Shown in pieces: positions 241 to 26,585 of a stretch of DNA of 64,000 nt. The notes beneath the pieces are model-generated. The model worked only from the letters and a program-made list of their open reading frames with translations. It did not search any database and was not told the origin of the DNA. The DNA is taken from the NCBI GenBank assembly GCA_002269645.1, contig NIVC01000090.1, positions 248,001 through 312,000 on the forward strand, given 5' to 3'. Position 1 is the stretch's first letter, and the number at the start of each line of letters is the position of its first letter. Both the position numbers and the translations under genes were made by a program. Source of the DNA: Macrostomum lignano. Its lineage: Eukaryota.

Positions 241-1181
241 CTAGGCAAGCTGAATCCGTTCTCCTGACACTATTTTCTTGAGATCGTCCAGCCTCCTCCT
301 GGCGAAGTCGTCCAAGTTGTTGAACCTCTCGAACTCGGACACCGCGGCGTCGACGGCTGCGACGTCGCGAGCGTCGGTAGCCGAAGCCAGCGACCTCACC
401 AGCGAGAGCTCGTCGGTGTCCTTGAACGATCCGCACAGCACAGCCAGCTGCTCCGCCTTCTCGCCGACTCCCGCAGCTCCTGAGCACAGCAGGCACAGAC
501 AGCTCTTGGCCAGGTGGTCCTTGGCTCCGAAGCTCAACAGACTGTGCTGCTCAGCCGACACTCCCAGATCCTCAAACACTGCGGCTGCCTCTGTCAGCCT
601 CCCGCAGTCCGCCGTCAACTCCGCGGCCTTGGCGCGGCTGCCCGCAGCGCTGGCCGGACTGTCCTCGCCGCTCCAGAAGTCCGCCGCTCTCACGTAGGCA
701 CCGATGGCCTCCTCGACTTGCTGAGATGAAGCCAGCAGGTCTCCAGCCTCCTCCAGCTGTCTGGCAGCGATGCTGAACTGGCCCTGCTCTGCGTACATCT
801 CGGCCGCTTGCTGCAGGCACCGCACGGCCTTCGGTCTCGTGTCTGGCAGCTTGCGGTAGCAGTTCGCAGCCTCCGAGTAATTGTTGGCCGCATCGAGCTC
901 GCATCGCCTCTGCTTTGAGAACTGCTCGGCCGCGGCTTCGAATGCCTGCCCAGCTTCGCGCCAGTTTTTAGATATTTTAAGTCTGTTTCCTTTGTCAAGC
1001 AAATGTTCAGATCCTTTGGGCTCTTTGGTGAATGAATAATATAAACCTATGCCAGTTACTGCAGCAACGGACAAAGCCGCCGCCTTTTTAACTTCATGTA
1101 ATTTGTGGTTTCTTAGATTTCCATTGTTCTGAAGTTCGCGAGTTTGGATTTCCGCGGCAGCTTGGACAATTGAACTGAATT
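241..1181 (-). CDS. alpha-SNAP-like protein copy 1 (group A); probable terminal coding exon with a TM-like segment; start codon not in this exon
   Basis: SNAP motifs W.EAG.AF..AA, DAANNYSEAANCYRK, GQFSIAARQ, ADFWSGEDSPASA, LLSFGAKD and LDDF align by eye to alpha-SNAP (NWSAAGNAF, GRFTIAAKH, ADYYKGEES, LLKYSAKD, LDQW). The ORF-track start at 1074 is TTG. The frame stays open upstream to a TTTTAG acceptor at 1182/1181 (phase 1), adding ...HEVKKAAALSVAAVTGIGLYYSF. Stop TAG at 241-243. Confidence 0.8.
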
Positions 1182-1463
1182 CTAAAATACAAACAAAAAT
1201 CGAGTTGAATTTTTAGCTCCAACCTTATTGTTTCCACCTCCAATCTACGGGTAGGAGCTAGTATATCGTTAGCTAATTTTAATCCTGGATATTAGAATAA
1301 CTAGATATGTCTTTCCCAATTAAAGTAGTAAAAAAGTAAAGCGTCTACTCTTTTTTTAGTAGTTTGACTGCGCAAAGTCACATGAATTAATTGTGGCAGC
1401 TAAAACTTCCTTCCCCTTCTCCGACTTTACGGCCCCAGAAGATATAGCGTTAAGAATAAATTA

Positions 1464-1745
1464 AGACGGACGAAACTCAGTCTAGGGGCAGGCTCAATCT
1501 GGCTCAGCCAATGAGAGAGCAGTAGGGAGAGAGGTTTAAGTCAGACGGACGAAACTCAGCCTAGGAGGACAGGCCCAGTCTGGCTCAGCCAATGAGAGAG
1601 CAGTAAGGAGAGAGATTTGAGTCAGACGGACGAAACTCTGCCTAGGGGGACAGGCCCAGTCTGGCTAAGCCAATGAGAGAGCAGTCAGGAGAGATGTTAA
1701 AGTCAGACACAAGCGGGCAAGTGGAAAGCCAGACTGTTTATCGGC
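1464..1745. repeat. three ~80-bp tandem units containing CAGCCAATGAGAG; dispersed repeat also at 23100-23285
   Basis: agacggacgaaactc recurs at 1464, 1543 and 1624. The terminal aagtcagacacaagc..ggaaag..actgttta is shared with the 23100-23285 copy. Confidence 0.85.
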
Positions 1746-1789
1746 ATGGCTGGGTAGCTCGCAATGAGCTACCCTTGGCTGGGTAGCTC

Positions 1790-2370: not shown

Positions 2371-3746
2371 GTCATTAGCTAGTAGGCTTTTTTACTGGCC
2401 CTCTAGGTAAAAATGTTTGCCAAGCCTTAGTGTAAAATGTTTTAAGCTTAGCAAAAAAAGTCAGTTTTCTTACGAGATGCGCGCGTGAAAATGAAAATGC
2501 TCCACCGGTGCCACAGCCATTGCAATAGGCCACCGGAAGGTATTAGCGAAATTGAAGCCAAACGGGTTGTTTCTCCAGGTGGTTTACTGTGTGACTGGCC
2601 CATCTTATTCAAGTCGAGCATGAATGACAGAAATTGCTATAAAAAGAAAACATGATTTACCAGTACTGAAAGCTGTAACTTTCTTTGACCTTCTTTGAGC
2701 CCAGAAGTTCTTGACTCAAGTGCTATAATTTAAATAGTAATTAAGAAAATGTAAACTGTTACAGGTTAAAAGTACTAAAAAATAATAATTACTCGCCCTA
2801 GTCACTTAGTAGTCATTCACTCAAGATTTGATATAAAAGTTAGCTAACTCAATCGTAGCATTATATACTTACTTTAATAATATTCTAATAACAAACTACA
2901 CTTCAAAGCAGAATGATTTGTCTAAGAGGAGAACAACAAAAAAATTCAAGTAACCAACAGTCTTTGTTAATATAATACTGCAAATAATTTTGAAATGGGT
3001 GTAACATACAGTGTGTAACAGTAATACGCATGTCCGTGTAAACAGTACATGTAAAAATGTGATATTAAATCGATGATCAACATCTTGAAATACATGTAGT
3101 TGGAAGCACTGACTCGCAAACACAGAAAATATGACCAATTAACCATTTTGAAAATGGAATAGTGAATTTTACATCCGACGGAAAACTAGGAATTTTGGAA
3201 ATTGTCTTTTACATAATATAATAGCTTAAAGTTTAAAGCTGCGTAAAACCTTATTGTAAAACACACAGGAACAAATACAAACAGTTGGTTGGTCATGGAA
3301 GTGAAACTGTTTGTTGATAAATATGCTTCTTTAAAAAAGGCAAAAATGATGATAAAAAACATCCAAAATGAATCTCAGCAATGGCGTATTTAGGAGCAAA
3401 TTAAGAAATAAAAAATAGCCACTGCTAAAAATTGTTTAGTCTATGCATAATAACAAAAAATCCTTGATTTTTACTACATAATTCACTTCGGACTCAAATG
3501 AAGACATTTTGTAGAAATTAATAAATTCTTGAAGATATCATTCAAAAGGCTACACATCATCATGGAAAGGACGGCAAAAAAAGCGCCCGAGTTTTTTACT
3601 CCTTAAAGGACACTAAACTTAATTAATGCAGTGCAATACTCATAAGCACCTGTTTTATTTATTGAAAGTGAACCGATGTAAAACAACTATGATAAATATC
3701 AGACAAGCCAATTCAAGTTCCAATATCTTCCAAAGAGAATTAAAGT

Positions 3747-4799
3747 TTAGGTCAGCGGAATTATCTCTCTGGCTGCGATTTTCCTCAACTGGTCCAGCCT
3801 CCTCCTGGCGAAGTCGTCCAAGTTGTTGAACCTCTCGAACTCGGACACCGCGGCGTCGACGGCTGCGACGTCGCGAGCGTCGGTAGCCGAGGCCAGCGAA
3901 CTCACCAGCGAGAGCTCGTCGGTGTCCTTGAACGAGCCGCACAGCCCAGCCAGCTGCTCCGCCTTCTCGCCGACTCCCGCAGCTCCTGAGCACAGCAGGC
4001 ACAGACAGCTCTTGGCCAGGTGGTCCTTGGCTCCGAAGCTCAACAGACTGTGCTGCTCAGCCGATACTCCCAGATCCTCAAACACCGCGGCTGCATCTGC
4101 CAGCCTCCCGCAGTCCGCCATCAACTCTGCGGCCTTGGCGCGGCTGCCCGCAGCGCTGGCCGGACTGTCCTCGCCGCTCCAGAAGTCCGCCGCTCTCAAG
4201 TAGGCATCGATGGCCTCCTTGACTTGCTGAGATGAAGCCAGTAGGTCTCCAGCCTCCTCCAGCTGTCTGGCAGCGCTGGCCGGACTGTCCTCGCCGCTCC
4301 AGAAGTCCGCCGCTCTCAAGTAGGCATCGATGGCCTCCTTGACTTGCTGAGATGAAGCCAGCAGGTCTCCAGCCTCCACCATCTGTCTGGCAGCGATGCT
4401 GAACTGGCCCTGCTCTGCGTACATCTCGGCCGCTTGCTGCAGGCACCGCACGGCCTTCGGTTTTGTGTCTGGCAGCTTGCGGTAGCAGTTCGCAGCCTCC
4501 GAGTAATTGTTGGCCGCATCGAGCTCGCGTCGCCTCTGCTTTGAGAACTGCTCGGCCGCGGCTTCGAATGCCTGTCCAGCTTCGTGCCAGTTTTGATGAA
4601 GCTTCAGCTGGTCGCCCTGCTGCACTGAGTGTTCAGGGTTGGCTTCAGAATTTGTAGAGAGCCGCCGCGGTGTCCATGTTGCAGAGTTACTCAGCTGCTG
4701 GTACTGTGTATCCCCCTGTTGTTGATAGCAACAGCAATATACAGCAACGACAATTGCAATGATTAGAACAACGAGAATGACGAAGACAATGGCAGACAT
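3747..4799 (-). CDS. alpha-SNAP-like protein copy 2 (group A); N-terminal signal-anchor plus CCC motif; internal 40-aa duplication
   Basis: True ATG at 4799 with an in-frame stop just upstream. MSAIVFVILVVLIIAIVVAVYCCCY precedes the SNAP domain. Stop TAA at 3747-3749. Minus-strand AATAAA near 3655-3665. Confidence 0.88.
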   Translation of the reverse strand: MSAIVFVILVVLIIAIVVAVYCCCYQQQGDTQYQQLSNSATWTPRRLSTNSEANPEHSVQQGDQLKLHQNWHEAGQAFEAAAEQFSKQRRRELDAANNYSEAANCYRKLPDTKPKAVRCLQQAAEMYAEQGQFSIAARQMVEAGDLLASSQQVKEAIDAYLRAADFWSGEDSPASAARQLEEAGDLLASSQQVKEAIDAYLRAADFWSGEDSPASAAGSRAKAAELMADCGRLADAAAVFEDLGVSAEQHSLLSFGAKDHLAKSCLCLLCSGAAGVGEKAEQLAGLCGSFKDTDELSLVSSLASATDARDVAAVDAAVSEFERFNNLDDFARRRLDQLRKIAAREIIPLT

Positions 4800-5092
4800 C
4801 GCTGCGTTGGCAGTTTAAAATTGTGTTTCAAATGCTGCTGTATCTCCTGAACGGTAGTATAGTCTGTCCAAGAGCTTTTTAGTGCCTCATAAATTGAAGA
4901 TTATTACTGGTACACGGACTAAAATATTTTAATACAAGTTGTATGGTACGGCAGCTCAGCCTTTTCAAAGCATCCTGGTGCTCTACTAACGTAGAATGAT
5001 AACTTAACACTGTAAAATAATAAGTTGATTACTACCTGACATTGATATAATATCTGTGTGGTCCGTGAGCTATGTGACTTGTAATCTACAGG

Positions 5093-5547
5093 AATCTGTA
5101 TTGTATTGGATCCGTGATTCACTGGAAATGTATTGTATTGGATCCGTGATTCACTGGAAATGTATTGTATGGGATCTGTGATTCACTGGAAATGTATTGT
5201 ATGGGATCCGTGATTCACTGGATATGTATTGTATGGGATCTGTGATTCACTGGAAATGTATTGTATGGGATCTGTGATTCACTGGAAATGTATTGTGTGG
5301 GATCTGTGATTCACTGGAAATGTATTGTGTGGGATCTGTGATTCACTGGATATGTATTGTATGGGATCTGTGATTCACTGGAAATGTATTGTATGGGATC
5401 TGTGATTCACTGGAAATGTATTGTATTGGATCTGTGATTCACTGGAAATGTATTGTGTGGGATCTGTGATTCACTGGAAATGTATTGTGTGGGATCTGTG
5501 ATTCACTGGAAATGTATTGTGTGGGATCTGTGATTCACTGGATATGT
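5093..5547. repeat. 32-bp minisatellite, ~14 copies (gtgattcactggaaatgtattgtatgggatct)
   Basis: gtgattc recurs every 32 bp from 5114 to 5530; no unique spacers. Confidence 0.95.
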
Positions 5548-6547
5548 AATACAGTACATGAGGATGTGGATCTGGGTTCTGTAAACTTTAGAACCTAGGA
5601 GCTCTAGTTGAGAAAATTGCTACCTTGAAAATATTTTTTGAAACTAGAAAAACCTAAAATCCTAAATGAACACTTCAAAATTATATCTTGGCTGAATAGT
5701 TAGTAATTAGCAGACAATAATCCATACACAGAATATTAATAGCTTGCAGGCCAGCAACAATTACTGGTACAACGAACAAATAAGTTCTGCTTCTAAAATT
5801 TTCGACCATTTGAAATGTAAAAACGTTTTGAGAAAGTGAACCATGAGTAACTGGTAAAACAGCCGAAATGTGTTGGCATAGATACTGACAAAAAGCTGAT
5901 AATTCAGCCAAAAATAGCGTATAAAAACACATATAGCAAGTCGAATGAAAATCTAAAATAAAAATTAAGGCAATGATGTTTCCGTTGGCTTAAAAGCAGA
6001 AGTACTTTTATAGAATGTATTTCTGGTCTGATCGTCATCTTCCATTCTGTCCTATTAGATGACGGACTGACCAAGTGCAGGGTAGCCTGGTAGAAGATGA
6101 TAATTCTTAACTGTCCTAAGATCGGCAGCACTGACATGCTTAGTGGATGACGATGTCAGGTCGCTACGAGACTTGCAACAGTAGGAATATCAGTGCCTTT
6201 AAAATTTAGGCAGAAAAAAGTTTTAATTTGTTACGACCACAAAAAAGATAAATATCGGCAGGAATATATAGATTTCTGATAACACAGTGATTTATCGTAA
6301 GTAGTCGTAACAAAAACAGAGGCAGATATACAAACCCAAAAGGTTGCGGTACTCAAGCCACGGGATTCACCCATAGGCCACGCTGTTAACACTGACGTTG
6401 ACGCTCAGTTAAACAAAAAAATTTATTTCATCAGCTGCTTTAGGAGCTATAATAAACTTAGAGGAAACTTTAAGACTCCAAAATCAATACAAAACAAGAA
6501 CATACTAATACTCATAAATATTTCAGGCTCAGTGACAAGCACCGCAA

Positions 6548-7615
6548 CTACTGCAGCTGCACCCCGCCAGAAGCCACAAACTGCCTCAGCTGGTGCAGTC
6601 TCCTCCTGGCGAAGTCGTCCAAGTTGTTGAACTTCTCGAACTCGGACACCGCGGCGTCGACGGCTGCGACGTCGCGAGCGTCGGTAGCCGAAGCCAGCGA
6701 CCTCACCAGCGAGAGCTCGTCGGTGTCCTTGAACGAGCCGCACAGCCCAGCCAGCTGCTCCGCCTTCTCGCCGACTCCCGCAGCTCCTGAGCACAGCAGG
6801 CACAGACAGCTCTTGGCCAGGTGGTCCTTGGCTCCGAAGCTCAACAGACTGTGCTGCTCAGCCGACACTCCCAGATCCTCAAACACCGCGGCTGCCTCTG
6901 TCAGCCTCCCGCAGTCCGCCATCAACTCCGCGGCCTTGGCGCGGCTGCCCGCAGCGCTGGCCGGACTGTCCTCGCCGCTCCAGAAGTCCGCCGCTCTCAC
7001 GTAGACATCGATCGCTTTTCTTTGTTCTTGAGATGCAGCCAGCAGGTCTCCAGCCTCCTCCAGCTGTCTGGCAGCGATGCGGAACTGGCCCTGCTCTGCG
7101 TACATCTCGGCCGCTTGCTGCAGGCACCGCACGGCGTTCGGTCTCGTGTCTGGCAGCTTGCGGTAGCAGTTCGCAGCCTCTGAGTAATTGTTGGCCGCAT
7201 CGAGCTCGCATCGCCTCTGCTTTGAGAACTGCTCGGCCGCGGCTTCGAATGCCTGTCCAGCTTCGTGCCAGTTTTGATGAAGCTTCAGCTGGTTGCCCTG
7301 CTGCAGAAGCTTGGCGGTGTCAGAGGTTCGCTGTAGGGCCGGCTGGGGCTGCGTCAGCCTGCTTGTTTCTTCATCATCTATAGGAAAGCAACACAGACAA
7401 ACGCCTATGGGTAACGTTAAATCTTCAGGTGACGTCATCCTGCTGGCTTCTTCATCTCTAGGAAAGCAACACGGACAAATGCAGCTCCAGCAGCTGTAGC
7501 AGCAGCCTTCAGGTGACGTTGTGCTGGTCTCTTTATCTCTAGGAAAGCAACACGGAAAAATGCAGCTCCAGCAGCTGCAGCACATTTCGCGAATGCAACT
7601 GCAGATGTTTCCCAT
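6548..7615 (-). CDS. alpha-SNAP-like protein copy 3 (group A); predicted N-myristoylated, Cys-rich (palmitoylated) N-terminus
   Basis: The track start at 7624 is TTG. The first ATG is at 7615, 3 nt after a TTGCAG acceptor, giving MGNICSC... followed by three CC(F)P[RI]D.E repeats and the SNAP domain. Stop TAG at 6548-6550. Confidence 0.87.
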   Translation of the reverse strand: MGNICSCIREMCCSCWSCIFPCCFPRDKETSTTSPEGCCYSCWSCICPCCFPRDEEASRMTSPEDLTLPIGVCLCCFPIDDEETSRLTQPQPALQRTSDTAKLLQQGNQLKLHQNWHEAGQAFEAAAEQFSKQRRCELDAANNYSEAANCYRKLPDTRPNAVRCLQQAAEMYAEQGQFRIAARQLEEAGDLLAASQEQRKAIDVYVRAADFWSGEDSPASAAGSRAKAAELMADCGRLTEAAAVFEDLGVSAEQHSLLSFGAKDHLAKSCLCLLCSGAAGVGEKAEQLAGLCGSFKDTDELSLVRSLASATDARDVAAVDAAVSEFEKFNNLDDFARRRLHQLRQFVASGGVQLQ

Positions 7616-7884
7616 TACCTGCAAGTAGAAAACAGTCTTTAATATGTAATTTTTTGTGTGTCTGCTTTTGCCGCTTTAAGTTTTAAGCTAATTCGTGCAA
7701 GGTGGGAAATGCATGAAATATCGTTGGGTATCTATCAGTACAGCTTCAGCAACTGGCCTACTCAGTTACTACAATAAAAAAACAGTAAAAAGATGGGATC
7801 ACAAATAAGTAATTGATAATATAAATAATAATAATATTTTATTTTTTGACTTGGATCTGCATTTTACTATAGGGGAATTTATTG

Positions 7885-8335
7885 GATTGTGAGGTATGGG
7901 ATGGAGATTGTGAGGTATGGGTTGGAGATTTTGAGATATGGGATGGAGATTGTGAGGTATGGGATGGAGATTGTAAGGTATGGGATGGAGATTGTGAGAT
8001 ATGGGATGTAGATTGTGAGATATGAGATGGAGATTGTGAGGTATGGGATGGAGATTGTGAGGTATGGGATGGAGATTGTGAGGTATGGGATGGAGATTGT
8101 GAGGTATGGGATGGAGATTGTGAGGTATGGGATGGAGATTGTGAGATATGGAATGTAGATTGTGAGATATGAGATGGAGATTGTGAGGTATGGGATGGAG
8201 ATTGTGAGGTATGGGATGGAGATTGTGAGGTATGGGATGGAGATTGTAAGGTATGGGATGGAGATTGTGAGGTATGGGATGGAGATTTTTGAGAAATGGG
8301 ATGGAGATTTTGAGATATGGGATGGAGATTGGGAG
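7885..8335. repeat. 21-bp minisatellite, ~21 copies (gagattgtgaggtatgggatg)
   Basis: Directly visible tandem units. Confidence 0.95.
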
Positions 8336-8879
8336 ACATGACTATTCTATTTCCTACATTGATTGTGCAATTTTCCAGTGAATTTGTGTTTTTATAGACT
8401 AGCAAATAAAGTTTTTAAATAGGTCTATATCGCGTGCAGAGAGACGGATTTTAATAACGTTGGTTTTGCGCAAAGCAAAGATCCTTTAACGGTGGAAAAT
8501 TGTACATACAGGTTAAACCAGTAAAGAATTTAATGAATTTGAAAAAAGCAGATCATAATTGACGAAATGGACAACGAAGTGTGGAAAATAAGCAAATAAA
8601 TGAAAACTGAAACCAAAATGTTGCTACCTACAGTAATAGCGGTTAAAAAAAGAGAAAACTCAGTCAATGAAATCATATTTAGTTATTACTGAATAAATAT
8701 GCGCAGAAACTATAACTAATTCGGGTATGTTTAACGTAAAATAAAATAAAAGCTATTGTTAAAATTGACCTACTTTAAAAAGCTTGTACAGGGACTTCTA
8801 GAAATATTACCAGGTGGACTGGAAGCTTGAAATAATGCTACGCCTTTAACGAAATCCTCTCACAACCAGCGCTGAGACA

Positions 8880-9152
8880 ATTCTGCGCACTCCGCTGACT
8901 CTTCACCACACACAAGCGCGCCAATACTGTACTCAGGCACGGCACTCATACACACGCTCACACAGGGTGTACATCGGCCCTGACTTTCTAATCGTCAGGC
9001 ATGTGCAGTCTCTGTGCCTTGGGGGTTGGCCCTCATGGCTGTGAATCGCACGACAACCTGCATTTTCGTGCACACAAGCCCCAAATGAATGTGTTTGCGT
9101 ACTCAATCGAACCAGGGGTCGTGGGCGTTTATTACCGCTGAGAAGCTCCGCC
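8880..9152 (-). mobile_element. degenerate tRNA-derived SINE-like element, same family as 11640-12010
   Basis: Shares the core ctgtgccttgggggttggccctca and flanks with 11730-11880. B-box-like GGTTCGATT on the minus strand near 9105-9113. Confidence 0.6.
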
Positions 9153-10325
9153 TTAGCACCTTCACTTGGGGATCAAAGGACTCACTTGGTCTAGCCAAAT
9201 CCAAAACACTGCTTGGGGCGGTAATTTTCAGATATAAGAAATAACAGTAGCCACCACATTGGCGTCAACATGGAGCCATGTTGCCTTCTAGCTTCCAGTC
9301 CAACTCTCTGCTGCTACTTCCAGAAGTCCTTGGCTAGTAAATGATTTGAAAAGCAAGCCATACAAATGGATAGAGCGCTATATTAGACAGACCATGTAAA
9401 CAGTAACTAGAGAAGACACTGGGACTAAAAGCAAATTTTAAGACGCAAGAAAAACAAAAGTACCGGCTGTTAAATAGTAAAGCATTGCTAAATTGACACA
9501 GATTGATTATTTTCCTGTTTGATAATACCAGTACGAGCGTAATTTTCAATTTTTGCTAGTTCTCTAATGTCCAGTCTAGATGTCCATGTTCAAGTCAATT
9601 TGCACTTTTTCTGTTCTCACGCCCTATTTTTTCCTACACGGGTGTCCGCTGGTGGTAAAAACGATGGTGGTAGGGGCAGAGAGGAGAGAGATAAGCGTTG
9701 AGTTAAGAACCGCGGCAGCCAATCAGAATGGAGCGAGGAGAGAGACTAAAATATATGTCTACACAAGGAGAGAGAGAATTTGAGTGTTCCTGCACTAAAG
9801 CAGTTTAAGCCAAACAGACTGAAATAGAAAGTCGGCCTAAAATAAACAAACAAACTTTATAATCGGGTGTTGTGTTGGTTAATCTAAGATTGGGGCGACT
9901 AACAAATTCCAGATTAGCATAATAAACTTTGCAATAGAAATTGGACTCATAACTTTGCGAAAAATACCGTTTCGAGGAAAATGAAATAAACAATTACATG
10001 AAAAAATTACATTGCACAAAACATATGTTGGTAAATTCAAACCACCGTATAATTCAAATGATAAATTGATTTTGTCGACAGCAACATATGGAAGAAGATT
10101 CCTACAATTTCCACGAAGTTGGCATTATTGCTGAGCCTTGTACTTCGCAGATTTATAAACCAGTAGAATACTTATAATAAACTGCAACAGCAGAATCATA
10201 CAATAGAAAGCTGGAGATTTCTCGCCTTATCATCATTATGGCTTTGGCATGCAAACTTAAACCTCCAAGACATAGAAGGATTGAGTCGAGTCCAATGCCG
10301 AATATATTAATACTCAGGCTGCTAC

Positions 10326-11411
10326 TTACAGTAACTGCACACTGTCACCAGTAGCTAAAAACTGTCTCAGCTGGTCCAGCCTCCTCCTGGCGAAGTCGTC
10401 CAAGTTGTTGAACCTCTCGAACTCGGACACCGCGGCGTCGACGGCTGCGACGTCGCGAGCGTCGGTAGCCGAAGCCAGCGACCTCACCAGCGAGAGCTCG
10501 TCGGTGTCCTTGAACGAGCCGCACAGCACAGCCAGCTGCTCCGCCTTCTCGCCGACTCCCGCAGCTCCTGAGCACAGCAGGCACAGACAGCTCTTGGCCA
10601 GGTGGTCCTTGGCTCCGAAGCTCAACAGACTGTGCTGCTCAGCCGACACTCCCAGATCCTCAAACACTGCGGCTGCCTCTGTCAGCCTCCCGCAGTCCGC
10701 CATCAACTCCGCGGCCTTGGCGCGGCTGCCCGCAGCGCTGGCCGGACTGTCCTGGCCGCTCCAGAAGTCCGCCGCTCTCAAGTAGGCATCGATGGCGTTT
10801 CTTTGATCTTGTGATGCAGCCAGCAGGTCTCCAGCCTCCTCCAGCTGTCTGGCAGCGATGCGGAACTGGCCCTGCTCTGCGTACATCTCGGCCGCTTGCT
10901 GCAGGCACTGCACGGCCTTCGGTCTCGTGTCTGGCAGCTTGCGGTAGCAGTTCGCAGCCTCCGAGTAATTGTTGGCCGCATCGAGCTCGCGTCTTCTCTG
11001 CTTCGAGAAGCGATCTGCAACAGTCTCAAACTTTTTGCCAGCTTCAAGCCAGTTTTTATCACGTTTGTTCCTGTTGCCATCGTCGATTAATCGCTGCTGC
11101 GATCCGTGCGTTTGACGCTTTCTAAACAGCAGAAAGTACAGTACCAGCAGCAGCAATACTACCAAGATGCACAGAAACCCGACAAAGATATAGGCTGTAT
11201 GTAATTTCGCTGGTGGCACAGTTGGCTGAGCTGTTGGAGCTGATGTAGTCGTGTCGATAGTAGTTGTGTTTGAATAGGACGGATTTGACGTCGTTAGGAC
11301 ACTCGTCGTTGGTCCGGTCGTACTGTTGGCATCAGCAGCAGCGGCACTTTCCACTGCTGCCATTGCGGTACTATTTGAACTTTTGATTTCGCTGCTATTC
11401 GAAGTCTCCAT
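10326..11411 (-). CDS. alpha-SNAP-like protein copy 4 (group A); receptor-like: Ser/Thr/Pro-rich stalk, TM helix, cytosolic SNAP domain
   Basis: The track start at 11486 is TTG; the first ATG is at 11411. The frame is open back to a TTTTTTCAG acceptor at 11471/11470 (phase 1), so an upstream coding exon is possible. Stalk has NSS/NST/NTT sequons. TM is AYIFVGFLCILVVLLLLVLYFLLF followed by RKR. Stop TAA at 10326-10328. Confidence 0.87.
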   Translation of the reverse strand: METSNSSEIKSSNSTAMAAVESAAAADANSTTGPTTSVLTTSNPSYSNTTTIDTTTSAPTAQPTVPPAKLHTAYIFVGFLCILVVLLLLVLYFLLFRKRQTHGSQQRLIDDGNRNKRDKNWLEAGKKFETVADRFSKQRRRELDAANNYSEAANCYRKLPDTRPKAVQCLQQAAEMYAEQGQFRIAARQLEEAGDLLAASQDQRNAIDAYLRAADFWSGQDSPASAAGSRAKAAELMADCGRLTEAAAVFEDLGVSAEQHSLLSFGAKDHLAKSCLCLLCSGAAGVGEKAEQLAVLCGSFKDTDELSLVRSLASATDARDVAAVDAAVSEFERFNNLDDFARRRLDQLRQFLATGDSVQLL

Positions 11412-11639
11412 TCTTGATTCTTGCGAGTTATTAAACAGATGTTCTTTAGTATGCTTTGGGTGAAAATGCACTGAAAAAAGGGTCAATAGTGATATTGAAA
11501 ATAGCGTTAAAATGAAGTTGGAACATAAAGATATTATCTGTTCCTAAGCTCTTTAAACATGGAACGGGAACATATTCTAGTACTTTGTTTCTTTGATTAA
11601 CACTGGCAGCTTGTAGGAAGTGAGGCAGACGTTACGTTA

Positions 11640-16608: not shown

Positions 16609-18291
16609 CTAAGAAAGCTCAACCGTTGAGCTCTGCACGCTTTTACGAGCATCTGTTATCCTGCGCATGTCGAACTCGTCCAATTTTTTGGGAAATTTGA
16701 ACCTCTGGTACTCGGCCACCGCCTTGTCGAAAGCTTCGACACTGATGGCTGCGGCAAGACCTTTGACCAGAGCGAACTCGTCACTTCTAGCGAATGACTC
16801 GCTCTTGGCTGCCAGTTCATCGGCACGTTTTGAGCAGGCTTTAAGATCCATTGCAAGCTGGCACAGACACGACTTGAGCATGTGATCATTGGCTCCGAAC
16901 TGAAGCAGACCGTGGCCTTGAGCCTCTTCACCCAGCTTTGCGAATTCGTTGGCAGCATCACGAAATTGGCCCGAATCGCCAAGCAAAATGGCCAGTTTGG
17001 TTCTACAGCTTGCGGCACTGGCGACACTGTTCTCAGCACTGAAGTGCTCTGCTGCCTTCTGGTAGCGGTTTATGGCTTCTTGCATTGAATTCGCATCGCT
17101 TACGAACTCAAAGCTGCTGAGCTCAGGATCGGAACTGTTCTGAGTATTCCAAGCGGGAAATTTCCTTGCCAATTCCTCAGTCAGCTCACCGGCTGTCTCC
17201 ATCAGTCTGGCTGCAATGCTGAACTGGCCGACTTCGCAGTAAAGTTGAGCTGCTCGCTCAAAGCAGTGAACGGCTTTGGGCTTGTCCGTCTTGCAAAAAC
17301 AGTTGGCAGCACTTTGATAGCAATCCGCCTGCTCGTAAATTGTGCTGCCACCTCGCTGAGAAAATTTCTCTGCAGCTTCTGAGAATGCGTCTCCGGCTTC
17401 GCTCCACTTCTTTTCCAGTTTGAATTTGTTGGCTTTCTGCATCAGCGACTCAGTTGTGTCTTTGTACCAAGTGAAATCAGTTGAAAAATTACTAAACCAT
17501 TTAGATGATTGGTGCCTATCACTTAGATTAGTAGCTTTCGAATCTTCAGTCACTGGTTGCAGACCCTGCTGACCTTCATCGTTTGTTGATTTCTGCCACG
17601 ACAACTTAAAATTATTAGAGCGCCACGTAGAAGCACTACTCAAAACGGACTTTGTTTGCTGAATATAAACTTCAGCCTTTGTTGTTTGATCGTCAGCCTT
17701 TATTGTCCGATAGTCAGATTTTATTGTCTGTTCGTCAGCCTTTGTTGTCTGATCGTCAGCCTTTGTTGTCTGATCGTCAGCCTGTGTTGTTTGATCGTCA
17801 GCCTTTGATGTTTGATCGTCAGCCTGCATCAGCGACTTGGAAGTATCCGCACGAGGTGTCAAAGCTGTACTAACGATTGCAGAGATGTTCCAATTTAAAG
17901 GATTAAAATTACGCAATGGGCCTTCAGGTGTCCTACTAGTGTCTTCATGGCTAGATTCGCGCGAGATTACTCGTAGATTTATGTTTGAACGTTCGCCGCG
18001 TTGCCCTTCTAACGAAGGCGTTCTTCCGCGTAAATGTTGAAAAGCGGCCCATATCAGTCCTTCCAATAGTACTACTACTATTACTAAACTAATGGAGGAA
18101 AAGCTTGCTGCTTCTACTGCTGCTATTACTACTGCTTTTATTACGTCCTTTAGTAAATCTACTACTAACAGCAGTATAGTGAATAATGTGAGTATTGTAA
18201 ATAAATACGGTTTCAATTTCCGCAGCAACCAGTACGCGAACTGTAGATCCAATCGAAACAGCCTCGGAACTCGATCAAATAATGATGGCAT
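16609..18291 (-). CDS. alpha-SNAP-like protein copy 7 (divergent group B); two hydrophobic segments, ADDQTTK repeats, SNAP domain
   Basis: ATG at 18291, 6 nt after a TTTTTTTCAG acceptor. SNAP motifs KANKFKLEKKWSEAGDAF, GQFSIAAR, LLQFGANDH, FARSDEF and LDEF. Stop TAG at 16609-16611. Confidence 0.87.
   Translation of the reverse strand: MPSLFDRVPRLFRLDLQFAYWLLRKLKPYLFTILTLFTILLLVVDLLKDVIKAVVIAAVEAASFSSISLVIVVVLLEGLIWAAFQHLRGRTPSLEGQRGERSNINLRVISRESSHEDTSRTPEGPLRNFNPLNWNISAIVSTALTPRADTSKSLMQADDQTSKADDQTTQADDQTTKADDQTTKADEQTIKSDYRTIKADDQTTKAEVYIQQTKSVLSSASTWRSNNFKLSWQKSTNDEGQQGLQPVTEDSKATNLSDRHQSSKWFSNFSTDFTWYKDTTESLMQKANKFKLEKKWSEAGDAFSEAAEKFSQRGGSTIYEQADCYQSAANCFCKTDKPKAVHCFERAAQLYCEVGQFSIAARLMETAGELTEELARKFPAWNTQNSSDPELSSFEFVSDANSMQEAINRYQKAAEHFSAENSVASAASCRTKLAILLGDSGQFRDAANEFAKLGEEAQGHGLLQFGANDHMLKSCLCQLAMDLKACSKRADELAAKSESFARSDEFALVKGLAAAISVEAFDKAVAEYQRFKFPKKLDEFDMRRITDARKSVQSSTVELS
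17673..17826 (-). repeat. coding 21-bp repeat (~7 x ADDQTTK) in copy 7
   Basis: cagcctttgttgtctgatcgt units, in frame with the ORF. Confidence 0.9.
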
Positions 18292-18436
18292 TTTTGTCTG
18301 AAAAAAAGTGTCAGTTTGAATTGTTGTTAGAAAAATGCTGAGCTTGGCTAAACAGGTAATAACGAGCGCACACGTTCTTAAATTTTAGCTGCTTTTTTTT
18401 ACTAATTTTCGAGCCAGATAATTTTAAAGTAGATTA

Positions 18437-20580: not shown

Positions 20581-21310
20581 TGGGCACCCCTGTCTCTTGG
20601 TGGCACCCCTGTCTCTTGGTGGCACCCCTGTCTCTTGGTGTCACCCCTGTCTCTTCGTGGCACCCCTGTCTCTTGGTGGCACCCCGGTCTCTTGGTGGCA
20701 CCCCTGTCTCTTGGTGTCACCCCTGTCTCTTGGTGTCACCCCTGTCTCTTGGTGCCACCCCTGTCTCTAGGTGGCACCCCTGTCTCTTGGTGGCACCCCT
20801 GTCTTGGTGCCACCCCTGTCTCTTGGTGGCACCCCTGTCTCTTGGTGTCACTCCTGTCTGTCTCTTGGTGGCACCCCTGTCTCTTGGTGGCACCCCTGTC
20901 TCTTGGTGGCACCCCTGTCTCTTGGTGTCACTCCTGTCTGTCTCTTGGTGGCACCCCTGTCTCTTGGTGTCACTCCTGTCTGTCTCTTGGTGTCACCCCT
21001 GTCTCTTGGTGTCACCCCTGTCTCTTGGTGCCACCCCTGTCTCTTGGTGGCACCCCTGTCTCTTGGTGGCACCCCTGTCTTGGTGCCACCCCTGTCTCTT
21101 GGTGCCACCCCTGTCTCTTGGTGGCACCCCTGTCTCTTGGTGGCACCCCTGTCTTGGTGCCATTCCTGTCTCTTGGTGGCAACCCTGTCTCTTGGTGTCA
21201 CTCCTGTCTATCTCTTGGTGGCACCCCTGTCTCTTGGTGGGCGCCCCTGTCTTTCGGTTGGCGCCCCTGTCTCTTGGTGGGCGCCCCTGTCTTTCGGTTG
21301 GCGCTCCTGT
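20581..21310. repeat. 19-bp minisatellite (gcacccctgtctcttggtg) with variant units
   Basis: gcacccc recurs at 20584, 20603, 20622 and onward. Confidence 0.95.
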
Positions 21311-21506
21311 CTCTTTGTAGGAGACCGTCTGGATGAGTTTCTGGTTTCCTAAAAACACTCTAATGTCTGAAAAACTTTAACAAAACAGCCTTGAATATGA
21401 ACAAAAAACAATCCATCTTGAACTCTCTTTACTCGATGTTAAACAACTATGATAAATATCAGACAAGCAAATTCAAGTTCCAATATCTTCCAAAGAAAAT
21501 TAAAGT

Positions 21507-22583
21507 TCAGGTCAGCGGAATTATCTCTCTGGATGCGATTTTCCTCAGCTGGTCCAGCCTCCTCCTGGCGAAGTCGTCCAAGTTGTTGAACCTCTCGAAC
21601 TCCGACACCGCGGCGTCGACGGCTGCGACGTCGCGAGCGTCGGTAGCCGAAGCCAGCGACCTCACCAGCGAGAGCTCGTCGGTGTCCTTGAACGAGCCGC
21701 ACAGCCCAGCCAGCTGCTCCGTCTTCTCGCCGACTCCCGCAGCTCCTGAGCACAGCAGGCACAGACAGCTCTTGGCCAGGTGGTCCTTGGCTCCGAAGCT
21801 CAACAGACTGTGCTGCTCAGCCGACACTCCCAGATCCTCAAACTCCCGGGCTGCCTCTGCCAGCCTCCCGCAGTCCGCCATCAACTCCGCGGCCTTGGCG
21901 CGGCTGCCCGCAGCGCTGGCCGGACTGTCCTCGCCGCTCCAGAAGTCCGCCGCTCTCAAGTAGGCACCGATGGCCTCCTCGACTTGCTGAGACGCAGCCA
22001 GCAGGTCTCCAGCCTCCTCCAGCTGTCTGGCAGCGATGCTGAACTGGCCCTGCTCTGCGTACATCTCGGCCGCTTGCTGCAGGCACCGCACGGCCTTCGG
22101 TCTCGTGTCTGGCAGCTTGCGGTAGCAGTTCGCAGCCTCCGAGTAATTGTTGGCCGCATCGAGCTCGCGTCGCCTCTGCTTTGAGAACTGCTCGGCCGCG
22201 GATTCGAATTCCTGCCCAGCTTCGCACCAGTTTTGATGAAGCTTCAGCTGGTTTCCTCGGTTTACACATTTTTCTGCTTGCTTTCTAGACCTAGTAAAAA
22301 ACTTTCGAACGCAGCGGCAGAGGTTCTTTGACGCAGAGTACAATCTTTCAACGGTGATTATATTGGTAACGGTATTTTTATGTGTGTTTATTAGAGTCTT
22401 TACGTTTTGGAGCCCAAGATAAATCAAAACTATAATTCCAACGAAAAATACGAGCAATAACATATACTCGTAGTTGTCCATGATAGGAGCAAAGGACGAA
22501 CCGGCGTCGGAAACATCGTTGGAAACATTGTTGCCCTGGATCTTTAAATTAGTCAGGTTGGATCTGCTTTCGGCTGGCGGCAT
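21507..22583 (-). CDS. alpha-SNAP-like protein copy 8 (group A); short ectodomain plus TM
   Basis: ATG at 22583 with an in-frame stop upstream and an acceptor at 22621/22620. Sequons NLT and NVS precede YMLLLVFFVGIIVLIYLGL and the SNAP domain. Stop TGA at 21507-21509. Confidence 0.88.
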   Translation of the reverse strand: MPPAESRSNLTNLKIQGNNVSNDVSDAGSSFAPIMDNYEYMLLLVFFVGIIVLIYLGLQNVKTLINTHKNTVTNIITVERLYSASKNLCRCVRKFFTRSRKQAEKCVNRGNQLKLHQNWCEAGQEFESAAEQFSKQRRRELDAANNYSEAANCYRKLPDTRPKAVRCLQQAAEMYAEQGQFSIAARQLEEAGDLLAASQQVEEAIGAYLRAADFWSGEDSPASAAGSRAKAAELMADCGRLAEAAREFEDLGVSAEQHSLLSFGAKDHLAKSCLCLLCSGAAGVGEKTEQLAGLCGSFKDTDELSLVRSLASATDARDVAAVDAAVSEFERFNNLDDFARRRLDQLRKIASREIIPLT

Positions 22584-23030: not shown

Positions 23031-23099
23031 TCGTATTTGGGTTGAGGATGGAAATCACTTCCCCCCCCTATTCCACAGACGTTTGAACACCCCTCCTGA

Positions 23100-23285
23100 A
23101 CAGCTGACCCCAATCTAGCTCAGCCAATGAGAGAGAAGAAAGGCGAGTGGCCAAGCACAGATGGACGAAACTAATCTTAGGGGGTAGGCTCAATCCAGCT
23201 CAGCCAATGAGAGAGCAGTAAGGAAAGAGGGTCAAAGTCAGACACAAGCAGGCAAGAGGAAAGACTGTTTACCGGCTGTTAATCG
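23100..23285. repeat. second copy of the CAGCCAATGAGAG-containing dispersed repeat
   Basis: Matches 1464-1745 (gacgaaact..., ctcagccaatgagagag, aagtcagacacaagc). Confidence 0.8.
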
Positions 23286-24254
23286 GCCTGACTGAGGGGG
23301 GGGGGCGCCACCCCTTTGCTCTCTTGCTCGCTTGTTTAGTTTAAAAGTCTAAACAAGCTTATCAAGAAACGAGAAAAGAAACGAAAAGAACGGAGTCTTA
23401 AACGTTAGGGATCATGTTTCTTCACGATTCACCATTCTAAGTATGCCTCATAGTTAGTTAATCAATCAGTGAAACAAAAAACTAATAACACACAAGACAA
23501 AATCTTAGTCTGAAAATTGTAACATTAAGCATATATTTAACCTCATTCTAGCGTTTGTTCAACAACATATCGTTATTTTCATCAACGAATATTATTTTTA
23601 CAATACATGAAAATTTCTTTGATAAATCTGAGTTTTGGAGAAGAGCCAAAATAAAAACAGGGCAAAAAACAAAACAAAAAATTTATTAGAACAGCATGAA
23701 AAAAACTCCAAAAGTATGAATTGAAAATTACAACAGACGATAACAACTTCTAACTGCTGTTTTAACTTTAACAGTTAAAAGTGTGACCAAACTTTATATT
23801 ACCGTGCAGTTCGGTTAAATTTTTAGTCAAGAAAAAACATTCAAGGTTATCGCAATATTTAAGTATTTATATACAAATAGCAAATAAATAACAAAACAAT
23901 CACTTGTTTTGACTGTTGTTTTGATATGGCATCATCATTAGGCTGATATAGGAAGTTTATGAAAATTAATACCAATTGATCCCCCTCTCTATAGTAACAA
24001 AATATTTTAGAGCCAATGTACAAAACACTAAAAAGTTACTAGGGGCTTGGGCAATTAAATTATTTAATTCAAAATACACAGATAAAAAACTTATAAAACA
24101 AGTACCAAGAGCATCCTTTTAATTTTGTGTATGTTAACGTCTTCTGTATGCTATTATTGTTATAACATAATTAGTGTTATTCATCACCACACAACAGTTT
24201 CGCCAAACAAGAAATTGTAAGTCGGGACGGATTAAAACAGTCAACTTCTTCTCT

Positions 24255-26585
24255 CTAAACAAGCTCAACCGTCGACGGCGTCGAGCTCCGATAATTTTTA
24301 CGAGCATCTTGTATCCGGCGCATGTCGAACTCGTCCAAATTGTTGAATCTCTCGTACTCGGCCACCGCCTTGTCGAAATCATCGACACTGTTGGCTGCGG
24401 CAAGACCTTTGACCAGAGCGAACTCGTCACTTCTAGCGAATGACTCGCTCTTGGCTGCCAGTTCATCGGCCTGTTTTGAGCAGGCTTTGGGATTCATTGC
24501 AAGGCACAGGCACGACTTGAGCATGTGATCATTGGCTCCGAACTGAAGCAGATCGTGGCCTTGAGCCTCTTCACCCAGCTTTGCGAATTCGTTGGCAGCA
24601 TCACGGAATTGGCCCGAATCGCCAAGCAAAATGGCCAGTTTGGTTCTACAGCTTGCGGCACTGGCGACACTGTTCTCAGCACTGAAGTAGTCTGCTGCCT
24701 TCTGGTAGCGGTTTATGGCTTCTTGCATTGAATTCGCATCGCTTACTAACTCAAAGCTGCTGAGCTCAGGATCGGAACTGTTCTGAGTACTCAAAGCGGG
24801 ACGTTTCCTTGCCAATTCCTCAGTCAGCTCACCGGCTGTCTCCATCAGTCTGGCCGCAATGCTGAACTGGCCGACTTCGCAGTAAAGTTGAGCTGCTTGC
24901 TCAAAGCAGTGAACGGCTTTGGATTTGTCCGTCTTGCAAAAACAGTTGGCAGCATTTTGATAGCAATCCGCCTGCTCGTGAATTGTGTTGCCACCTTGAT
25001 GACGAAATTTCTCTGCAGCTTGGGAGAATGCGTCTCCGGCTTCGCTCCACTTCTTTTCCAGTTTGAATTTGTTCGCTTTCTGCATCAGCGACTCAGCAGC
25101 ATCCGCATCAGGAAGTGTAGCCACGGCTGCATCTTTGAGCCATCTCCAACCAATTGAAATATTACTCGACCATGAACTTGATGATTGATGTTTACCACAT
25201 TGACTCTGTTCAGTGGCATTCGAATCTTCACTCACTGTTTGCTGACTCATCTGACCTTCGCTCTTTAGATTCAGATCTTCAGTCACTGGTTGCTGACTCA
25301 GCTGACCTTTAGCCTTTGTTGTCGGATCTTCAGTCACTGGTTGCTGACCCAGCTGACTTGTAGCCTTTGTTGTCGGATCTTCAGTCACTGGTTGCTGACC
25401 CAGCTGACTTGTAGCCTTTGTTGTCGGATCTTCAGTCACTGGTTGCTGACTCAGCTGACCTTTAGCCTTTGTTGTCGGATCTTCAGTCACTGGTTGCTGA
25501 CCCAGCTGACTTGTAGCCTTTGTTGTCGGATCTTCAGTCACTGGTTGCTGACCCAGCTGACTTGTAGCCTTTGTTGTCGGATCTTCAGTCACTGGTTGCT
25601 GACCAAGCTGACTTGTAGCCTTTGTTGTCGGATCTTCAGTCACTGGTTGCTGACCCATCTGACCTTTAGCCTTTGTTTCCGGATCTTCAGTCACTGGTTG
25701 CTGACCCTGCTGACCTCCAGCACTTGCCGGATTTTCAGTCACTGGTTGCTGACCAAGCTGACTTGTAGCCTTTGTTGCCGGATCTTCACTCACTGGTTTC
25801 TGACCCAGCTGACCTTTAGCCTTTGTTGTCGGATCTTCAGTCACTGGTTGCTGACCCAGCTGACCTTTAGCCTTTGCCGGATCTTCAGTCACTGGTTGCT
25901 GACCCTGCTGACCTCCAGCACTTGCCGGATTTTCAGTCACTGGTTTCTGACCCAGCTGACCTTTAGCCTTTGTTGTCGGATCTTCAGTCACTTGTTTCTG
26001 ACCCAGCTGACCTTTAGCCTTTGCCGGATCTTCAGTCACTGGTTGCTGACCCAGCTGACCTTTAGCCTTTGTTGTCGGATCTTCAGTCACTGGTTGCTGA
26101 CCCTGCTGACCTCCAGCACTTGCCGGATCTTCAGTCACTGGTTGCTGACCCAGCTGACCTTTAGCCTTTGTTGTCGGATCTTCAGTCACTGGTTGGTGAC
26201 CCAGCTGACCTTTAGCCTTTGTTGTCGGATCTTCAGTCACTGGTTGCTGACCCAGCTGACCTTTAGCCTTTGCCGGATCTTCAGTCACTGGTTGCTGACC
26301 CAGCTGACCTTTAGCCTTTGTTGCCGGATCTTCAGTCACTGGTTGCTGGCCCAGCTGACCTTTAGCCTTTGTTGCCGGATCTTCAGTCACTAGTTGCTGA
26401 CCCAGCTGACCTTTAGCCTTTGCCGGATCTTCAGTCACTGGTTGCTGACCCTGCTGACCTTTAGCCTTTGCCGGATCTTCAGTCACTGGTTGCTGACCCA
26501 GCTGACCTTTAGCCTTTGTTGTGGGATCTTCAGTCTTTGTTGTCGGACCTTTACTTCGAATTGAATATGATATTTCAGCATTCAT
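24255..26585 (-). CDS. alpha-SNAP-like protein copy 9 (group B); ~25-26 x 16/17-aa GQLGQQPVTEDP(T)TKAK repeats; no TM in the ORF
   Basis: ATG at 26585, 4 nt after a CATTCAG acceptor. The SNAP domain is close to that of copy 7. Stop TAG at 24255-24257. Confidence 0.85.
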   Translation of the reverse strand: MNAEISYSIRSKGPTTKTEDPTTKAKGQLGQQPVTEDPAKAKGQQGQQPVTEDPAKAKGQLGQQLVTEDPATKAKGQLGQQPVTEDPATKAKGQLGQQPVTEDPAKAKGQLGQQPVTEDPTTKAKGQLGHQPVTEDPTTKAKGQLGQQPVTEDPASAGGQQGQQPVTEDPTTKAKGQLGQQPVTEDPAKAKGQLGQKQVTEDPTTKAKGQLGQKPVTENPASAGGQQGQQPVTEDPAKAKGQLGQQPVTEDPTTKAKGQLGQKPVSEDPATKATSQLGQQPVTENPASAGGQQGQQPVTEDPETKAKGQMGQQPVTEDPTTKATSQLGQQPVTEDPTTKATSQLGQQPVTEDPTTKATSQLGQQPVTEDPTTKAKGQLSQQPVTEDPTTKATSQLGQQPVTEDPTTKATSQLGQQPVTEDPTTKAKGQLSQQPVTEDLNLKSEGQMSQQTVSEDSNATEQSQCGKHQSSSSWSSNISIGWRWLKDAAVATLPDADAAESLMQKANKFKLEKKWSEAGDAFSQAAEKFRHQGGNTIHEQADCYQNAANCFCKTDKSKAVHCFEQAAQLYCEVGQFSIAARLMETAGELTEELARKRPALSTQNSSDPELSSFELVSDANSMQEAINRYQKAADYFSAENSVASAASCRTKLAILLGDSGQFRDAANEFAKLGEEAQGHDLLQFGANDHMLKSCLCLAMNPKACSKQADELAAKSESFARSDEFALVKGLAAANSVDDFDKAVAEYERFNNLDEFDMRRIQDARKNYRSSTPSTVELV
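25220..26540 (-). repeat. coding 48/51-bp tandem repeat in copy 9
   Basis: Units of 16 or 17 codons keep the frame open over ~1.3 kb. Confidence 0.92.

Follow-up and report, generated by a model that had tools for sequence, protein, structure and literature searches.

A tandem array of alpha-SNAP-derived genes in Macrostomum lignano with candidate membrane-anchored N-termini, a gene-converted core and a constrained penultimate leucine

In 1997, Barnard, Morgan and Burgoyne reported that L294 alone, of the final 10 residues, is conserved among the SNAPs then known, and the L294A form of alpha-SNAP was found to retain NSF binding, to have lost stimulation of its ATPase activity, and to be inhibitory (PMC2139964). 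In the 20S particle, the N-terminus of the SNAP lies at the bilayer beside the membrane anchors of the SNAREs and its C-terminus faces NSF; in 2017, Song, Orr, Duan, Merz and Wickner demonstrated that Sec17 no longer requires its apolar loop once a transmembrane anchor has been added at its N-terminus, and that Sec17 bearing L291A,L292A is inactive with Sec18 and fully active in Sec18-independent fusion (PMC5540461). In soybean, the resistance-type alpha-SNAPs of the Rhg1 locus carry altered C-terminal residues, bind wild-type NSF poorly and are cytotoxic (PMC12807349). Most opisthokonts are said to express a single alpha-SNAP (PMC6172762), and several paralogues are reported from Giardia and Leishmania and called unusual elsewhere (PMC6172762, PMC12019078). 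The present analysis concerns a 64,000-nucleotide stretch of the Macrostomum lignano genome (GCA_002269645.1, contig NIVC01000090.1, positions 248,001 to 312,000 of the forward strand; hereafter the window), in which nine intact minus-strand open reading frames (ORFs) between positions 241 and 26585 encode SNAP-related proteins. These proteins have exchanged the N-terminal part of alpha-SNAP for candidate membrane anchors and have kept its penultimate leucine, and the reading that best fits them, to which we give a roughly even chance, is that they are membrane-resident, NSF-coupled SNAP paralogs.

The nine genes, numbered g1 to g9, all match the Pfam family PF14938 (SNAP; E 1e-46 to 1e-55), and a six-frame scan of the whole 64 kb with the SNAP profile (hmmsearch) returned these nine ORFs and no other copy. 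Three subfamilies were distinguished: group A (g1-g6 and g8), group B (g7 and g9) and group C, consisting of the protein P0006 encoded on contig NIVC01000992.1. A phmmer search against the Protein Data Bank (PDB) gave alpha-SNAP as the best structure (3j96_G, E 2.2e-28), collinear to the last residues, and in group A the homology to alpha-SNAP begins at about residue 40 and continues to the C-terminus. An AlphaFold2 model of g6, built from 56 sequences, displays the expected stack of helical hairpins at a mean predicted local distance difference test (pLDDT) score of 92.8, followed by a non-helical tail of lower confidence (residues 313-319). When that model was compared with the PDB by Foldseek, Sec17 and alpha-SNAP chains of 20S particles came first (template modelling, or TM, score 0.73-0.82; root-mean-square deviation 2.0-2.8 A), and HAP40 (TM 0.64-0.77) and gamma-SNAP ranked after them. 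Each gene was thereby shown to encode a complete SNAP fold, from approximately alpha-SNAP residue 40 to the C-terminus. In this family the fold consists of a twisted sheet of TPR-like helical hairpins on the N-terminal side and a helical bundle on the C-terminal side. A gamma-SNAP-like identity was considered and rejected: gamma-SNAP (2ifu) reached a phmmer E of only 6e-5, against 2e-28 for alpha-SNAP, and Foldseek placed it under all of the Sec17 and alpha-SNAP chains.

The GenBank annotation of the M. lignano assembly was built from a genome-guided RNA-seq transcriptome (PMC5730564), and the existence of a model therefore indicates transcription; such RNA-based models cover g1 (BOX15_Mlig021756g2), two genes of a second array on contig NIVC01000684.1, and the third paralog, P0006. 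With nine copies in the window, six in the second array and one in group C, the genome holds at least 16. Close database relatives are exclusively M. lignano proteins (BOX15_Mlig021756g2, BOX15_Mlig027212g2), and the anchored-SNAP family was found in M. lignano alone among the collections searched, from which data for sister species may be missing. We interpret the region as a tandem array, specific to this lineage, of nine transcribed genes that descend from alpha-SNAP, the adaptor linking the NSF ATPase with SNARE complexes. Its genes are the following, in window positions, with the penultimate leucine codon and the C-terminal tail of each.

g1, ORF: 241-1074, minus strand; 3' exon extending to 241..1181; PF14938 E 2.5e-52; stop codon 241-243; Leu codon 247-249 (CTT); tail RIQLA
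g1, 5' coding exon: 2473..2603, minus strand; starts MGQSHSKPPGE and is followed by an intron of ~1.29 kb
g2: 3747-4799, minus strand; Leu codon 3753-3755 (CTG); tail IIPLT
g3: ORF 6548-7624, or 6548..7615 from the first ATG, minus strand; Leu codon 6554-6556 (CTG); tail GVQLQ
g4: 10326-11486, minus strand; Leu codon 10332-10334 (TTA); tail SVQLL, with one additional residue upstream
g5: 12703-13725, minus strand; Leu codon 12709-12711 (CTG); tail GVQLQ; database relative P0002
g6: 14851-15810, minus strand; Leu codon 14857-14859 (CTG); tail GVQLQ
g7 (group B): 16609-18291, minus strand; Leu codon 16615-16617 (CTT); tail TVELS
g8: 21507-22583, minus strand; Leu codon 21513-21515 (CTG); tail IIPLT
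g9 (group B): 24255-26585, minus strand; Leu codon 24261-24263 (CTT); tail TVELV, with three additional residues upstream

An earlier note on this DNA, made from its letters, had concentrated on the C-termini, and its account of them stands; what it overlooked is that the N-terminal part of alpha-SNAP has been replaced in these proteins by candidate transmembrane or acylation anchors. Helix 1 is absent from all copies. The apolar membrane loop, which in alpha-SNAP lies around F27/F28 and in Sec17 at F21/M22, is absent from group A, and groups B and C retain a vestige of it at most. In place of that region stand N-termini that are unrelated to one another, eight of the nine containing a predicted membrane-attachment device, either a transmembrane-like segment or a Met-Gly/Cys acylation motif. 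Six of the proteins (g2, g4, g5, g6, g7 and g8) contain 19-residue windows with mean Kyte-Doolittle hydropathy (KD19) between 1.97 and 3.53, and bovine alpha-SNAP has no comparable hydrophobic segment by the same measure. Several of these segments have N-x-S/T sequons before them and basic residues after them, an arrangement that would be expected of proteins with an outside N-terminus and a cytosolic SNAP domain. The second array carries the same N-termini.

The two candidate acylated proteins are g1 and g3. In the former, comparison with the RNA-based model P0003 (BOX15_Mlig021756g2) places the start of the SNAP exon at ~1179-1181 and matches the N-terminus of the model at 2612-2472 with 98% identity (tblastn); as we read the pattern, its MGQSHSK start fits N-myristoylation, G-{EDRKHPFYW}-x2-[STAGCN]-{P}. 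Translation of g3 from its first ATG gives MGNICSC, a myristoylation pattern with an adjacent cysteine, and the part before the SNAP domain contains 18 cysteines, in runs like MCCSCWSCIFPCCFPRD and CCYSCWSCICPCCFPRD; there is no transmembrane segment, and the N-terminus is conserved in the second array. Among the hydrophobic N-termini, that of g2 consists of the transmembrane-like IVFVILVVLIIAIVVAVYC (KD19 3.53) followed by CCC and the SNAP domain; that of g4, of a Ser/Thr-rich stretch with five N-x-S/T sequons, the transmembrane-like VGFLCILVVLLLLVLYFLL (KD19 3.26), RKRQ and the SNAP domain, its 5' end being uncertain (the first ATG lies at 11411, and an upstream exon is possible); that of g5, of three sequons, the transmembrane-like VVFSWWLAVLLSSLMLWLL (KD19 2.14), QVKK and the SNAP domain; and that of g8, of two sequons, the transmembrane-like YMLLLVFFVGIIVLIYLGL (KD19 2.79), a Lys/Arg-rich linker and the SNAP domain. 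The hydrophobic N-terminus of g6 contains VVLLVYWLLKKLKTILVLV and, further on, VWTFFHSTIVPLVWNMLL, ahead of the SNAP domain, and g7 has two transmembrane-like segments (KD19 2.45 and 2.39) with a linker of ADDQTTK-type repeats. In g9, a 17-residue repeat (51 nt) in ~26 copies, at 25220-26535, precedes the SNAP domain. Short matches that might be remnants of the apolar loop (KWFSNF in g7 against SFFSGL, TFFHS in g6 against GFFHS of the tapeworm protein, and SWFS in P0006) are suggestive only.

Several observations on individual genes belong beside these. The neighbours g6 and g7 share an N-terminal motif (YWLLKKLK and YWLLRKLK) between proteins whose SNAP domains are only ~45% identical, which hints at exchange of N-terminal modules between subfamilies. 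Within its SNAP domain g7 has an insertion of ~26 residues, and its Pfam alignment starts at profile position 16. In g2, an in-frame 120-nt tandem duplication (4150-4395; 2.0 copies, 97% match) repeats ~40 residues (AARQ...SPAS), corresponding to approximately one extra helical hairpin in the twisted sheet, and the Pfam match falls into two stretches. A single gene in the annotation (419 residues, with no recorded Pfam hit) begins at the start of g4 and ends at the g2 stop, across window positions ~3747-11468 (L002 1145-8866); it is probably a chimeric transcript model that arose because the cores of the genes are nearly identical.

At the other end of the proteins, the nine tails that the earlier note had quoted, each with leucine at the penultimate position (-2), proved to be exactly those of the nine ORFs. 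In every one the leucine aligns without gaps with L294 of alpha-SNAP, to which L291 corresponds in Sec17; its codon varies among CTT, CTG and TTA, a purely synonymous variation; and the indels of the tails, adding one residue in g4 and three in g9, lie upstream of the motif and leave the [IV]-x-L-x-stop register unchanged, position -4 being isoleucine or valine in all nine copies. An alignment anchored on the stop codon, of the kind that the note had proposed, sorted the tails into seven classes and left -2 as the only invariant position among the last 12, the other 11 averaging 14% pairwise identity. The corresponding crude probability is ~0.003 for six classes, or ~0.008 if five tail lineages are independent, both being rough figures and not the outcome of a formal test. 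Immediately 3' of the stop codons the DNA is unalignable, at ~35% identity.

The rule extends beyond the window. The second array contains six collinear copies (g8', g7/9', g6', g5', g4' and g3') with the same tails and leucine at -2. An exhaustive profile search of 1.84 billion representative proteins returned P0006 as the next match after the window's own proteins (162 versus 494 bits); it is encoded by one uninterrupted ORF of 287 residues on NIVC01000992.1, also begins at about residue 40 of alpha-SNAP, and has the tail GPRLA. In neighbour-joining trees, groups A, B and C clustered together to the exclusion of canonical SNAPs in 100 of 100 bootstrap replicates, a result to which long-branch effects may contribute. 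All three subfamilies, in 9 + 6 + 1 copies, therefore have leucine at -2, and the paralogs elsewhere in the genome, which the note had named as the place where the pattern might fail, follow it. Its other doubt concerned the 3' ends: differently spliced termini were considered and rejected, because the RNA-based models P0003, P0004 and P0006 share the stop codons of the ORFs and both the SNAP profile (to positions 272-280 of 282 in PF14938) and alpha-SNAP itself align to the very end. These comparisons support a site-specific constraint on the penultimate leucine, as the note had argued from a smaller set. Within the second array, one g6-like copy (L003 9620-10558) has a frameshift that splits its ORF into 91 and 220 residues, and its GenBank model, P0004 (185 aa), begins at an internal methionine; this is either a decaying copy or an assembly error.

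Comparison with SNAPs in general places that constraint in proportion. Across 114 SNAP representatives with complete C-termini, drawn from all eukaryotes, leucine occupies the penultimate position in 64%, isoleucine in 15%, phenylalanine in 5% and valine in 3%, so that one of these four is found there in 87%; the tapeworm canonical alpha-SNAP, for example, ends DEEDIN. Position -3 is D in 54% of the representatives and -4 is mostly D, P or E, and 27% of them have at most one acidic residue in the last 8, which indicates that a weakly acidic tail is not rare in itself. The conserved leucine is thus real, but taken alone it repeats the family rule published in 1997.

Divergence among the genes is unevenly distributed along the domain. 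Synonymous sites of the seven group A genes differ little in the core, where the proportion of differences (pS) is 0.049, and far more at the two ends, with pS of 0.59 over the domain's first 32 codons and 0.49 over the final 20 columns of the alignment. Nucleotide identity in the 5' flank is ~35%, the level of random sequence; it rises to 95-100% from nt 60-90 of the 771-nt domain as far as nt 735, and returns to ~35-50% after the stop codon, the edges of the block being sharp. The gene closest to g3 changes along its length: it is g2 for the first helix, g4 for the core and, with an identical sequence, g6 for the tail. The GC content of third codon positions is 0.80 in the core versus 0.55 and 0.68 at the ends. 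These sequence comparisons show a core of ~650 nt that appears to have been homogenised by gene conversion in all seven genes, flanked by a first helix, a last 12-15 codons and surrounding DNA that behave as old, mosaic, exchangeable modules. The tails accordingly differ mainly because they lie outside the conversion tract; relaxed selection as the only cause of their divergence was rejected, since synonymous divergence there is ~10-fold that of the core.

The same comparisons bear on the age and the upkeep of the genes. Diverged ends and unalignable flanks indicate that the copies are old, but each of the nine ORFs is intact and stops one residue past the leucine. Over the whole domain, group A genes compared with one another give a ratio of nonsynonymous to synonymous divergence (dN/dS) of 0.42-0.77; comparison of group A with group B gives ~0.25 at most (dN ~0.5, dS saturated), and comparison of the two arrays gives 0.5-1.1, from few changes. 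Long-term constraint is clear in these estimates, and short-term constraint appears weak or is blurred by conversion. The note's further contention that these are not dead pseudogenes agrees with the intact ORFs, the low ratio between A and B, and the RNA-based models.

Which interactions the retained fold might still make can be judged from the residues listed, in a review (PMC11532144, citing Zhao et al. 2015), as contacting SNAREs and the NSF N-domain. The SNARE-binding surface is given there as the basic residues K122, K163, K203 and R239 with a zero-layer loop at L197/Y200, and the acids touching the NSF N-domain as D217/E249/E252/E253 and D290-D293. Sites were numbered by alignment to bovine alpha-SNAP, using a reference sequence whose positions 48-287 agree with the PDB alignment, and their states in the nine proteins are as follows.

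K122: R in all nine
K163: G or S in all nine
K167: retained in all nine
L197 and L198: retained in all nine
K199: S or Q
Y200: F in all nine
K203: K throughout group A (seven genes); N in g7 and g9
D217: G; D in g7 and N in g9
R239: D in all nine
E249: S or A
E252: D or a gap; S in group B in one alignment
E253: A or a gap
D290-D293: no more than one acid remains; the final 8 residues contain 0-1 D/E

The LLSF/LLQF form of the LLKY motif, the arginine at K122 and the loss of most of the acidic patch had each been pointed out in the earlier note, and each is borne out by this alignment.

Seen against the polarity of the 20S particle, these features suggest a mechanism. The N-terminal anchor would hold the SNAP domain on a particular membrane, its N-terminal side at the bilayer and its C-terminal side facing NSF. 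The concave face would still bind a helical bundle, probably from a restricted set of SNAREs, because R122, K167, L197, L198 and F200 are kept, with K203 in group A, and K163 and R239 are lost; the altered face may thereby narrow the range of bundles bound. The free tail would then trigger ATP hydrolysis by NSF through its penultimate leucine, a step for which the behaviour of Sec17 L291A,L292A is pertinent: that variant fails with Sec18 only, so that retention of the leucine argues for an NSF-coupled role. The differing N-termini could route individual copies to different membranes or cell types, and the net outcome might be either local stimulation or local damping of SNARE recycling. In its fullest form, which we regard as possible rather than probable, this would make the array the first natural membrane-integral or lipid-anchored SNAPs, proteins in which the apolar loop has been swapped for permanent anchors (candidates being of transmembrane, myristoyl/palmitoyl and cysteine-string-like kinds) and which act as compartment-resident NSF activators or regulators, with a converted core and a diversifying address and tail around a fixed leucine.

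A number of observations weigh against membrane-resident, NSF-coupled SNAPs. The transmembrane and acylation assignments derive from hydropathy and a pattern of low specificity; the 5' exon structure is established for g1 alone and the N-termini of other genes may be misread, as the GenBank model spanning g4 to g2 also warns; and the g9 ORF has no recognisable anchor (a hidden g7-like anchor upstream of it was looked for within the window and rejected). Two of the four listed basic SNARE-contact residues, K163 and R239, are missing from every copy, K203 is N in g7 and g9, and the acids that contact the NSF N-domain are largely substituted, at D217, E249 and E253 as well as across D290-D293. 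Group C lacks K122, K163, K167, L197 and Y200 and still has the leucine, which may consequently serve something other than a SNARE-coupled NSF cycle. Ratios of nonsynonymous to synonymous differences (pN/pS) of 0.4-1.1, within groups and between arrays, point to weak recent constraint, those between arrays being based on few changes.

Some of the same substitutions led the earlier note to view these proteins as modulators or partial antagonists with weakened NSF binding, in which, as at Rhg1, unproductive occupancy of SNAREs and NSF would damp trafficking, possibly alongside a co-adapted NSF. The replacement of the D-E-E-D run and of most of D217/E249/E252/E253, together with the loss of K163 and R239, would fit such a role, and the locus is tandem and multicopy, as is Rhg1, where altered C-terminal residues accompany poor wild-type NSF binding and cytotoxicity. 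The known dominant-negative protein L294A, however, shows the reverse pattern, binding NSF without the leucine, and more than a quarter of ordinary SNAP representatives have tails as weakly acidic as these. The net charge of the C-terminal bundle is moreover -2 to -4 in eight of the nine proteins, against -4 in alpha-SNAP (g7 being the exception at +2), with other acids nearby, so that a loss of NSF binding cannot be read off the sequence; and an anchor would raise the local concentration of the protein and could thereby offset weaker electrostatic recruitment. A modulating or partly antagonistic role of this kind is possible but rather unlikely, and is the most serious of the alternatives.

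Less probable still is that the SNAP fold now serves as a scaffold attached to membranes, with partners that are neither SNAREs nor NSF, in the manner of HAP40 and with the leucine kept for recognition of an [IV]-x-L-x-COOH terminus. The presence of HAP40 among the Foldseek matches illustrates that the fold can change partners, group C has kept the leucine after losing nearly all of its SNARE contacts, and the uniform I or V at -4 is unlike the canonical residue there. Groups A and B nevertheless retain L197, L198 and F200 of the zero-layer loop as well as R122 and K167, the leucine is the exact homologue of L294, and no alternative partner was suggested by any search. Finally, it is very improbable that these are recent, largely neutral duplicates heading for decay, with the leucine inherited by descent and the ORFs kept intact through gene conversion: pN/pS of 0.4-0.8 within groups and up to 1.1 between arrays, the frameshifted second-array copy and the known redundancy of the DV1 assembly (PMC5730564) would be in keeping with that view, but tails and first helices differ at pS ~0.5-0.6 between unalignable flanks, change at the leucine is synonymous only amid poorly conserved neighbours, groups A, B and C differ at dN ~0.5 or more with dS saturated and still encode a SNAP fold, and RNA-based gene models exist.

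The surroundings of the array are rich in repeats. A calpain gene comes next after g1 on NIVC01000090.1. Spacers within the array each contain a minisatellite of their own (1787-2203, 5097-5548, 7885-8335 and 20583-21315, with periods of 23, 32, 21 and 19 nt, in 14-38 copies), the source of spurious long low-complexity ORFs on both strands. Two satellite arrays, at 31649-39601 (period 636 bp) and 43378-47525 (period 623 bp), with self-identity above 85% at those shifts, sit between the SNAP array and a putative LINE element; the latter is marked by a plus-strand ORF of 1135 residues (53480-56887) that looks like the endonuclease and reverse transcriptase of a non-LTR (lacking long terminal repeats; LINE-type) retrotransposon, and a separate plus-strand ORF (48774-49472) looks RNase H-like. 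Between 60668 and 62007 lies a degenerate heptamer repeat of GAGAAGA type (~188 copies, 63% match) that coincides with extreme GC and AT skew.

In the literature searched, no natural transmembrane or otherwise membrane-anchored SNAP paralogue was found, nor any account of the M. lignano array family. The gene identifiers Mlig021756 and Mlig027212 were not mentioned in the full texts searched and had 0 occurrences in the supplementary tables of PMC5816591, where no expression pattern was found. A query with the tapeworm alpha-SNAP P0008, aimed at the canonical alpha-SNAP of M. lignano, gave no M. lignano name among the 120 matches listed, which is not evidence of absence. A word-index search with the group B domain gave no match at all, the query itself included.

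The array bears upon two questions about SNAP function: whether the N-terminal loop of alpha-SNAP/Sec17 is a membrane tether only or a bilayer wedge as well, and how much of NSF activation is owed to the single C-terminal leucine as opposed to the acidic patches. A family that lacks the loop, has the leucine and has dropped most of the acids constitutes a natural mutant series, in an animal in which transgenesis and RNA interference work. It is also an unusual expansion of a gene normally present as a single copy in animals, and a clear case of modular concerted evolution, with a converted core and unconverted, exchangeable ends.

Of the systems with which the array can be compared, HAP40 (F8A), the partner of huntingtin, shares the fold and exemplifies its re-use; its sequence similarity to the array is far below that of alpha-SNAP, however, and it has no membrane anchor. 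To our knowledge, no engagement of SNAREs or NSF by HAP40 is known. The paralogues of Giardia and Leishmania resemble the array in that an adaptor has been duplicated and its copies occupy different compartments, and both Leishmania paralogues have the C-terminal leucine; they differ in numbering two or three and in being soluble, full-length and unanchored, with no tandem array and no concerted evolution reported. Soybean Rhg1 is alike in being a tandem-repeated locus of alpha-SNAPs with altered C-terminal residues at otherwise conserved sites, whereas its proteins are full-length and soluble with few substitutions, its repeat block comprises four genes, and a compensating NSF allele accompanies it.

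With canonical alpha-SNAP/Sec17 the array proteins share the fold over ~250 residues, the position of the penultimate leucine and a flexible C-terminal tail, as well as L197, L198, Y200 (as F), K122 (as R) and K167. They differ from it in lacking helix 1, in place of which they carry transmembrane-like segments, acylation motifs, mucin-like stretches or repeat linkers, in lacking K163 and R239, in the substitution of most of the acids that contact NSF, and in number, the at least 16 copies of the M. lignano genome standing against the usual single alpha-SNAP of opisthokonts. The closest parallel is the engineered TM-Sec17, in which the SNAP domain is held at the membrane by an N-terminal transmembrane anchor that stands in for the apolar loop. 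That protein is a laboratory construct containing the whole of Sec17, whereas the anchors predicted here are natural, vary from copy to copy, and replace the N-terminal segment; in these respects, the array looks like a natural counterpart of TM-Sec17.

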